Assembly (NCBI GenBank): GCA_039096225.1
Contig: JBBPEB010000015.1
Location: 62,001 to 126,000, forward strand
DNA length: 64,000 nucleotides
Source of the DNA: Blastocystis sp. Blastoise
Lineage: Eukaryota; Protista; Bigyra: Opalinata
Direction of reading: 5' to 3'
Part shown: positions 1 to 15,743 of the stretch, piece by piece
Numbering within the stretch: the stretch's first letter is position 1
How the letters are laid out: each line of letters opens with the position of its first letter
Notes under the pieces: model-generated
Database searches by the model: none
What the model saw: the letters and a program-made list of their open reading frames with translations, nothing else
Told to the model about the DNA's origin: nothing
Translations under genes and position numbers: made by a program

Positions 1-1051
1 ATGTATGAAGTTATTACTTATTACTTATTACTATTTATAAATATAGTAGTAAATAAAATTCGCATTAACGATTTTTGAATTAATTCTCAATGCTATTAAT
101 TGTAGTATTGTTTGTAAGTGAAATGCTATCATAACATCTTCCTTATTAATTTTTGAGAGTTGTAATATTTAAAAATTGAATTTATAAAATAATAAATAAT
201 TAAATAAAAATAAATAAATAAAAGAATTATATTTTTTATTATGTTGATTTAAGTTAAAATATAAATATACTTAAAATCGTTTTTGTTAACTACTTTAAAC
301 ACTGTAATGAATACATCATTAACTTTTGAAAATTATTGTGACGAGACATTGTAATGTACTGAATTATATATTCTATGCTTCAAATTCTTATTATACTTTA
401 TTCCTCATAGCTATTATAACTATATATAAATAGAATTTAACTTAATAAGACTTTCAAAAAGAAGATCAGTTTATAATTCACTGTTTTATTGTCATGATGT
501 TGTTTATTTATTATATACTAGAACACTATATCTAGAAGACAACAATTACAGTTTCAATTATTATAAATATCACTTAATGATACATGATTAACACATTCTC
601 TTTTATGTCAAGTATTAAACACAGATTCTGTTTTATATACATGCCAGAAATATATATATATTTGATTCTAATACTTTAGTAAAAAAATAATAGATGAAAA
701 TACACTTTTAGCCAAAATTAATAAAACACATAAATATTATTAAAACTATATCTATTTTCCACATTTATAAGTGATTATTTAAATATATATCTTATAAATT
801 GATATATACATATGGAAGTATTAATATACTTTCCTAAGAAGATAAATATAACAGTTTCAATATCAAATCTATTATAAAATCTATAAAAAAAACTTAAGTC
901 AGGAATTGGACCTGAAAAGAGTCGATGAGACTTTTCCTTACTATCAAAGCTTAAGTAGAGTTTATATATATATATATCTGCATATATTAAATATAATTAT
1001 AAGTAACTTAAAAACATGAAATCCTATATATAAAAAGAATAAAATATAATG

Positions 1052-2300
1052 TATAATAATAATAATAATAATAATAATAATAATAATAAAATATATAAAC
1101 ATAATAATAATAATAATAATAATAATAATAATAATAATAATAATAATAATAATAATAATAATAATAATAATAATAATAATAATAATAATAATAATAATAA
1201 TAATAATAATAATAATAATAATAATAATAATAATAATAATAATAATAATAATAATAATAAGTATAATAAAATATATAATAATAATAATAAAACCTATATA
1301 AGTATAATAATAATAAAATCTATATAATCATAATAAAACATATATAAGTATAATATATATAATAATAATAATAAAACCTATATAAGTATAATAATAATAA
1401 AATCTATATAATCATAATAAAACATATATAAGTATAATAATAATAAAATTCATTTTAGAATAATAATAATAAAATCTATATAAGTATAATAATAAAGCCT
1501 ATATAAGTATAATAATAATAATAATAAAATCTATATAAGTATAATAATAAAACCTATATAAGTATAATAAAACCTATATGATAATAATAATAAAACCTAT
1601 ATAATAATAAAATATATATAAATATAATAAAATATATATATATAATAATAATAATAATAATAATAATAATAATAATAATAATAATAATAATAAAATGTAT
1701 ATAAGTATAATAAAACCTATATAATAATAATAATAATAATAATAATAATAAAATGCATATGGTAATAAGAAGAAGAATAAAATCTATAAGAATAAGAATA
1801 AAACCCATATAATAGTAAGAAGAATAAAACATATATAATAATAATAATAATAAAACCTATAAGTATAATAATAATAATAATAAAACCTATATAATAATAA
1901 TAAAATCTATATAATAATAATAATAATAAAACCTATAAGTATAATAATAATAAAATCTATATAATAATAATAAAATCCATATAATAATAATAATAATAAA
2001 AACTATATAAGTATAATAAAATATATATAATAATAAAATCTGTATAATAATAATAAAAATAAAATCTATATAATAATAATAAAACCTATAAGTATAATAA
2101 AATCTATATAATAATAAGTATAATAAAATATATATAATAATAATAATAATAATAATAATAATAATAATAATAATAATAATAATAATAATAATAATAATAA
2201 TAATAATAATAATAATAATAATAATAATAATAATAATAATAATAATAATAATAATAATAATAATAATAATAAACATAATAATAATAGAAATAATAATAAT
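1052..2300. repeat. (AAT)n tracts plus degenerate 'taataataaaacctatataagta / aataaaatctatata' minisatellite (mirror copy ~13440-14692)
   Basis: Directly visible; produces the spurious poly-N/poly-I/poly-Y ORFs in the track. Confidence 0.9.
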
Positions 2301-13900: not shown

Positions 13901-15743
13901 TTATTATTATATATGTTTTATTCTTCTTACTATTATATGGGTTTTATTCTTATTCTTATAGATTTTATTCTTCTTCTTATTACCATATGCATTTTATTAT
14001 TATTATTATTATTATTATTATTATATAGGTTTTATTATACTTATATACATTTTATTATTATTATTATTATTATTATTATTATTATTATTATTATTATTAT
14101 TATATATATATATTTTATTATATTTATATATATTTTATTATTATATAGGTTTTATTATTATTATCATATAGGTTTTATTATACTTATATAGGTTTTATTA
14201 TTATACTTATATAGATTTTATTATTATTATTATTATACTTATATAGGCTTTATTATTATACTTATATAGATTTTATTATTATTATTCTAAAATGAATTTT
14301 ATTATTATTATACTTATATATGTTTTATTATGATTATATAGATTTTATTATTATTATACTTATATAGGTTTTATTATTATTATTATATATATTATACTTA
14401 TATATGTTTTATTATGATTATATAGATTTTATTATTATTATACTTATATAGGTTTTATTATTATTATTATATATTTTATTTATTACTTATTATTATTATT
14501 ATTATTATTATTATTATTATTATTATTATTATTATTATTATTATTATTATTATTATTATTATTATTATTATTATTATTATTATTATTATTATTATTATTA
14601 TTATTATTATTATTATTATTATTATTATTATTATTATTATTATGTTTATATATTTTATTATTATTATTATTATTATTATTATTATTATTATACATTATAT
14701 TTTATTCTTTTTATATATAGGATTTCATGTTTTTAAGTTACTTATAATTATATTTAATATATGCAGATATATATATATATAAACTCTACTTAAGCTTTGA
14801 TAGTAAGGAAAAGTCTCATCGACTCTTTTCAGGTCCAATTCCTGACTTAAGTTTTTTTTATAGATTTTATAATAGATTTGATATTGAAACTGTTATATTT
14901 ATCTTCTTAGGAAAGTATATTAATACTTCCATATGTATATATCAATTTATAAGATATATATTTAAATAATCACTTATAAATGTGGAAAATAGATATAGTT
15001 TTAATAATATTTATGTGTTTTATTAATTTTGGCTAAAAGTGTATTTTCATCTATTATTTTTTTACTAAAGTATTAGAATCAAATATATATATATTTCTGG
15101 CATGTATATAAAACAGAATCTGTGTTTAATACTTGACATAAAAGAGAATGTGTTAATCATGTATCATTAAGTGATATTTATAATAATTGAAACTGTAATT
15201 GTTGTCTTCTAGATATAGTGTTCTAGTATATAATAAATAAACAACATCATGACAATAAAACAGTGAATTATAAACTGATCTTCTTTTTGAAAGTCTTATT
15301 AAGTTAAATTCTATTTATATATAGTTATAATAGCTATGAGGAATAAAGTATAATAAGAATTTGAAGCATAGAATATATAATTCAGTACATTACAATGTCT
15401 CGTCACAATAATTTTCAAAAGTTAATGATGTATTCATTACAGTGTTTAAAGTAGTTAACAAAAACGATTTTAAGTATATTTATATTTTAACTTAAATCAA
15501 CATAATAAAAAATATAATTCTTTTATTTATTTATTTTTATTTAATTATTTATTATTTTATAAATTCAATTTTTAAATATTACAACTCTCAAAAATTAATA
15601 AGGAAGATGTTATGATAGCATTTCACTTACAAACAATACTACAATTAATAGCATTGAGAATTAATTCAAAAATCGTTAATGCGAATTTTATTTACTACTA
15701 TATTTATAAATAGTAATAAGTAATAAGTAATAACTTCATACAT
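10913..15743. repeat. Right arm of giant inverted repeat
   Basis: Mirror of 1-4833. Only a few small differences seen (near 11700, TA-run length near 12500, near 14480). Confidence 0.97.
12199..13425 (+). pseudogene. CSE1: Exportin-2/Cse1 internal gene fragment (right-arm copy), six exons, truncated at both ends, one frameshift
   Basis: EEGPVERLKANIIEII; PYAKTITEKVWNIL...RYN; IIIPCLLFTDDDMNNYEDMPYEYIQNELE; NPSQWREKEACLSL; VNINEFFTLYIIPEL resemble the Cse1 middle HEAT region. Exon 12979-13052 is 74 nt between two phase-0 junctions and hits TGA. Confidence 0.75.

Follow-up and report, generated by a model that had tools for sequence, protein, structure and literature searches.

The element at the left edge of the 64-kb window analysed here (the whole stretch, C4:62001-126000, of the tortoise gut protist Blastocystis sp. 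Blastoise) is very probably a young, likely autonomous Mutator-like element (MULE) of the transposase-SWIM-Ulp1 type, whose two ends became inverted copies of each other over 5.1 kb, presumably when one end was copied onto the other. It has defined boundaries with a TSD at each of two insertions, contains an intact frame and carries a piece of a host gene inside its arms (Table 1).

The sequence-only reading had described two nearly identical inverted arms of about 4.83 kb. In a BLASTN self-comparison, window positions 1-4833 and 10913-15743 are indeed reverse complements at 99.81% identity (5 mismatches, 3 gap openings). The near-identity was thus confirmed, but the length was underestimated: the symmetry continues exactly for another 312 bp to the left of window position 1, and rightward to 16055, where the search proposed by that reading for its end and for a 9-11 bp TSD found both. 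The resulting TIRs of 5,145 and 5,143 bp are 99.8% identical, with three small differences, two of them in microsatellites. The symmetry ends at the two tips, which both begin with GAG (GAG.../...CTC), and directly outside them lies the perfect 9-bp TSD TCAAATGTG, a match expected by chance at ~5e-6 given the local composition. The whole element spans C4:61689-78055 (window -311 to 16055) and comprises 16,367 bp, with the arms making up 63% of its 16.4-kb length. At the inner ends, 124 bp separate the right arm from the downstream ATG of the core gene, and 573 bp separate its stop codon from the left arm; the two arm/core junctions have no common sequence beyond the arm end. The insertion is apparently intergenic, ~100 bp before a gene. 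This multi-exon gene (~16140-18461, plus strand), which by eye resembles a membrane-anchored aspartic protease, starts ~100 bp from the right end of the element. One protein encoded in the window is GenBank KAK8803212.1. Elsewhere in the genome, a coding-looking duplication of 1.9 kb with 85% identity was noticed between C4:2174539-2176397 and C29:948145-949962.

Table 1. Features of the long-armed element and its relatives (positions without a contig name are window positions).
Feature	Location	Strand	Remarks
Left arm (TIR)	1..4833; outer end 312 bp left of window at C4:61689	+	5,145 bp; downstream of gene
Left TSD copy	C4:61680-61688
Right arm (TIR)	10913..16055	-	5,143 bp; upstream of gene
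Right TSD copy	16056..16064	+	9 bp, TCAAATGTG
Unique core	4834..10912		6,079 bp (C2 copy: 6,397 bp)
Transposase part	8618..10788 (exons 10788-10533, 10341-9805, 9636-8618)	-	Motifs read directly
Rest of frame	5407..8583	-	Linker exons, predicted Ulp1/C48 protease, basic C-terminal tail; stop at 5407
Eight exon-exon junctions	6275..7327	-	C4 copy without GT-AG introns (32-72 nt, two runs of four) that are present in C2
Two introns, 40 and 33 nt	7757..7892	-	In C4 copy, absent from C2 copy
Terminal ~250 bp	15800..16055	-	Probable ancestral TIR; GAG start, repeated 9-11 bp palindromic motif
AT-rich modular array	1030..2310, again at ~3570-3850	+	(AAT)n and ~17-26 bp units, Foldback-like
Mirror of modular array	13441-14714
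Captured host CSE1/exportin-2 fragment	2330..3560	-	About six exons with introns, inside the array
Mirror CSE1 fragment, right arm	12187..13415	+
Parent host CSE1	C19:474322-475542
Non-autonomous sister elements	C25:970870-975459; C22:260198-265346; C2:788476-793114		4.6-5.1 kb
MITE-like derivatives of element tip	C24:73233-73649; C16:274003-274419		417 bp

The genome was searched for further copies with the same ends and different flanks, as had been suggested, and one was found at C2:178978-195659 (16,682 bp). It comprises the same tips and the same arm/core junctions between unrelated flanks, is also apparently intergenic, and is bordered by a 9-bp TSD of its own, AAAAAATTC (chance of a match ~4e-5). 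The cores of both copies show 0 substitutions in 4,124 compared bases. The four arms measure 5,141-5,145 bp, that is without length variation, with 3-4 small differences among the arm sequence compared; at one diagnostic site they show four states. Because this second copy with the same junctions has other flanks and its own TSD, the 16-kb element is a mobile unit, not a duplicated flank and, with little doubt, no fold-back artefact. Judged from the two sequences, it has evidently jumped recently as one 16-kb unit, in at least one transposition. Consequently, of the two origins that the sequence-only reading had considered, an autonomous MULE whose TIRs are exceptionally long and bear cargo gains support from the G-initiated tips, the 9-bp TSD and the second insertion with identical junctions. 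Support also exists for the recent origin that it had offered, next to a possible ongoing arm homogenisation, for the near-identity of the arms.

On its minus strand, the core holds 12 exons and 11 GT-AG introns that join, in a predicted splice model, into a single frame running from 10788 to 5407 with 1,404 codons; an exon-by-exon phase check found no internal stop in it. The first part of this frame contains an N-terminal C2H2-type motif, a first D (IDATH), a second D (HSDG), a CxxH, an E (NNPTE) and a SWIM-type finger. We take the residues in IDATH, HSDG and NNPTE to be the MULE DDE triad, with the CxxH after the second D. Pfam searches with single exons gave weak matches to Transposase_mut (PF00872, E=0.07) and to the ZSWIM1-3 RNaseH-like domain (PF21056, E=0.03), while the MULE profile PF10551 did not match this transposase, the domain of which is split by an intron and diverged. 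With the transposase profiles of Pfam matching weakly, it is from its motifs, its TSD and its tips that we assign the element to the MULEs. PF10551 itself matched 30 other places in the genome, at least 28 of them above the cut-off; they belong to several other MULE families and many have identical scores, which indicates broad recent MULE activity in the isolate.

The core had been thought to contain only a transposase gene. The transposase is there, but the frame continues to the SWIM finger and on to an Ulp1/C48 protease. The last exon matches Peptidase_C48 (PF02902, E=1e-8) and contains a Q...C motif, the H and D motifs are in an upstream exon, and the catalytic H, D and C are thus predicted from motifs and profile. 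A ubiquitin-like domain considered at 7893-8175 was rejected, as it had no Pfam match, and a search for contigs encoding the last exon found no record. Five paralogous loci exist in the genome at 35-42% identity, and for four of the five an Ulp1 match follows 4-32 kb downstream, on the same strand of that contig. As 42%-identical paralogues in the genome also have the Ulp1 part, it is not this part that is new in the element, which we regard as probably autonomous.

A comparison of 4,124 core bases shows ten introns, each exact from GT to AG, that are present in one of the two copies and absent from the other; together they account for the whole length difference of 318 bp. Whichever way these differences are read, they imply transcription of the core gene and splicing at these sites. 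Probably, and with good confidence, they are an artefact of polishing with mRNA reads. This reading is based on the size of the lost introns and on oddities in three other genes. All missing introns have 72 nt or less, and the six that are longer than 73 nt are all kept (Fisher p=0.003); a read-bridging limit of ~73 nt follows from our calculation with default aligner scores and assumed 150-nt reads. The single-copy gene RPS8 (window 39586-40406, minus strand) has three introns of 80, 114 and 77 nt, none of which ends with an AG acceptor (0/3). Instead, the intron ends repeat 3-13 nt of the adjacent exon, such that the acceptors are overwritten by exon sequence. Introns of this kind are not viable biology and are as expected of spliced reads in a consensus. 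Because all RPS8 introns lack AG and their ends echo the neighbouring exon, mRNA reads appear to have altered the assembly consensus. Judged from coordinates, a 42-nt intron that is kept in the arm copies (window 2373-2414) is missing from the host CSE1 on C19. FTHFS is duplicated (window 28194-30347, minus strand, and C16:1762684-1764949), with annotated proteins that differ by one amino acid; the C16 copy is net 41 nt longer, which is probably another difference in the presence or absence of an intron. A Logan contig with FTHFS, of 68% DNA identity, was not informative on this point, and a search for contigs encoding FTHFS found no record.

Alternatively, the differences might be genomic, in that conversion mediated by reverse transcripts removed runs of adjacent introns since the copies separated. 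All ten of the ten indels are exact GT-AG introns with the frame preserved, they sit next to one another in three groups within the 3' half, and they are reciprocal between the copies. We infer that the Blastoise assembly is that of the tortoise Blastocystis isolate Rus-B, which comprises 33.3 Mb and was built with Nanopore R9, Flye, racon, Polypolish and POLCA, where the published methods give Illumina DNA reads for Polypolish (PMC12129017). Deletions in repeats that are identical are not readily accounted for by the pipeline as stated, which speaks for genomic loss as well. The error limit of Polypolish and the mapping-quality filter of POLCA should block such deletions there. However, genomic loss would need three multi-intron events, yet no point substitution occurred in 4.1 kb. 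In addition, only introns up to 72 nt are gone, near the largest gap that a 150-nt read can bridge, and the RPS8 introns, the CSE1 intron kept in the arms and the FTHFS twin speak against it. We thus consider genomic loss unlikely, and slightly more so the wider idea that element copies and other duplicated genes lose introns by RNA-templated conversion faster than point mutations accrue. If that idea were true, RNA-templated intron loss would be observable in real time. Under the preferred reading as a polishing artefact, any intron loss or non-canonical splice site described for this genome deserves distrust until DNA reads have been used to check it.

Each arm consists of an outer tip of ~250 bp, a unique AT-rich stretch, the modular (AAT)n array and an inner unique stretch. 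The sequence-only reading had, in the first of its two alternatives, called the arms cargo-bearing, which holds, and the content of each can now be named as a 1.2-kb fragment of host CSE1 (Pfam Cse1, E=1.8e-6; one exon with 98% protein identity to C19, where the DNA matches too). The terminal ~250 bp are common to the sister elements and the MITE-like copies at 74-97% identity. The three sister elements have TIRs of 231 bp and contain the arm body on one side only, at 79-86% identity; they lack CSE1, and their modular array is uninterrupted. This sister family is young and has nested tips, with an outer extension of 173 bp around an inner tip like that of the 16-kb element, just inside the right end. 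The MITE-like derivatives have unequal ends as well (97% over 76 bp and 86% over 190 bp).

The sisters with their short TIRs suggest a recent copying of one end onto the other, and the following history could be envisioned. An ancestor would have had TIRs of ~250 bp and, on one side, a subterminal AT-rich array of 4 kb. Into this array a 1.2-kb piece of host CSE1 would have been copied, probably by template switching during gap repair; capture through template switching is known for Pack-TIRs (PMC8277862). After that, an inverted copy of this 5.1-kb end in full would have taken the place of the other end, through repair or conversion for which the paired short TIRs served as primer; extension of TIRs by recruiting internal sequence is known in Galileo (PMC3573991). 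Since the transposase would require the outer tips only, the enlarged element could still transpose as a unit. At the arm/core junction and in the 3' part of the core, a search for relics of an old end found none.

It is improbable that the long arms are instead an old trait of the lineage, maintained by conversion from arm to arm, with the sister family derived by loss of the core and of most of one arm. CSE1 is present in both arms, the four states at one arm site could mean partial conversion, and other multi-kb palindromes exist in the genome, e.g., C5:848439-859580. However, beyond 76-231 bp the two ends are unlike each other both in the sister family and in the MITE-like copies, and no long-armed relative at intermediate divergence was found in the genome. 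The palindrome on C5 is a separate one of 11 kb, with arms of 3.5 kb at 98.6% identity that end in (TA)n and have no GAG tip; with other giant palindromes in the genome, the host may tolerate them generally.

That an assembly fold-back or misjoin made the arms is far less probable again. The assembly was made with Nanopore R9 and Flye (PMC12129017), it carries other consensus artefacts, and the arms are almost identical, all of which would suit such an origin. However, the arms are present at two loci with two unique flanks each, correctly paired by the 9-bp TSDs with the low chance probabilities given above; both copies show two distinct arm-core junctions; the diagnostic site differs among the four arms; and a search of the genome gave no short-route version, i.e., with short ends, of the tip or the 3' junction. 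Finally, the second origin considered by the sequence-only reading was an inverted duplication of flanking host DNA, made once at a MULE end by aberrant transposition and outside the mobile unit. It would account for host CSE1 sequence in the arms but can be discarded, since the arms are enclosed by the TSD and move together with the element, the CSE1 parent is located on a different contig (C19), and the presence of these arms at the C2 insertion already refuted it.

The element shows that nearly perfect TIRs of 5 kb are compatible with a MULE transposing whole, at several times the lengths reported for MULEs or Galileo in the part of the literature covered. Since its sisters in this genome have short TIRs, the transition that was proposed to lead from simple ends to Foldback-like ones may have been caught here in one step. 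One might speculate that the inverted, duplicated cargo could yield hairpin RNA against the essential gene CSE1, and that the inverted arms could serve as a substrate for inversion of the core.

Compared to the MULE superfamily (MuDR and relatives; survey in PMC6446971), the element is alike in its DDE transposase with CxxH and SWIM finger, its G-initiated TIRs, its 9-bp TSD, its insertion near gene starts and its MITE-like derivatives. MULE TSDs comprise 8-11 bp outside the TIRs; here they have exactly 9 bp at both copies, with different sequences, as expected of several insertions of a mobile element. In contrast, the survey gives TIRs of 14-500 bp in its text and of 640 bp as the largest among the table rows examined (PMC6446971), while those described here comprise 5,145 bp, about eight times the longest listed, in an element of 16.4 kb. 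In a partial literature search, no MULE turned up whose TIRs measure several kb, nor one that carries cargo in both TIRs. MULEs with Ulp1 are known from melon, Arabidopsis, rice and grapevine (PMC2528002 and its reference 38). Like there, Ulp1/C48 is encoded downstream of the transposase, and in the present element both apparently belong to one frame; its stramenopile host and giant TIRs set it apart. The tandem-TIR MULEs (PMC3310237) resemble the sister family with its outer 173-bp tip outside the inner tip; this likeness does not apply to the 5-kb arms.

Pack-MULEs and Pack-TIRs likewise contain captured host gene fragments with introns (PMC6431247, PMC8277862), and the present element has an identifiable parent locus, CSE1 on C19, and a non-autonomous sister family. 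However, Pack-MULEs are mostly 1-2 kb in size and non-autonomous, with the cargo between short TIRs (PMC6431247, PMC8277862), while the element described here encodes its own transposase in an intact frame and carries the cargo inside the TIR, so that it is present twice and inverted. Elements with long TIRs offer parallels to the arms. Growth of simple TIRs into Foldback-like ends was proposed before (PMC3169594), and the FARE, Phantom and Tm1 MULEs (PMC3169594) share with Galileo of the P superfamily (PMC3573991) and with the present element, with its AT-rich array at 1030-2310 and ~3570-3850, long TIRs, internal modular repeats and growth by recruitment of internal sequence. In Galileo, TIRs reach a maximum of ~1.26 kb, and those of its copies whose TIRs are longest lack a transposase (PMC3573991). 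In contrast, the TIR of the element described here is four times longer, nearly perfect and cargo-bearing, and flanks an intact gene.
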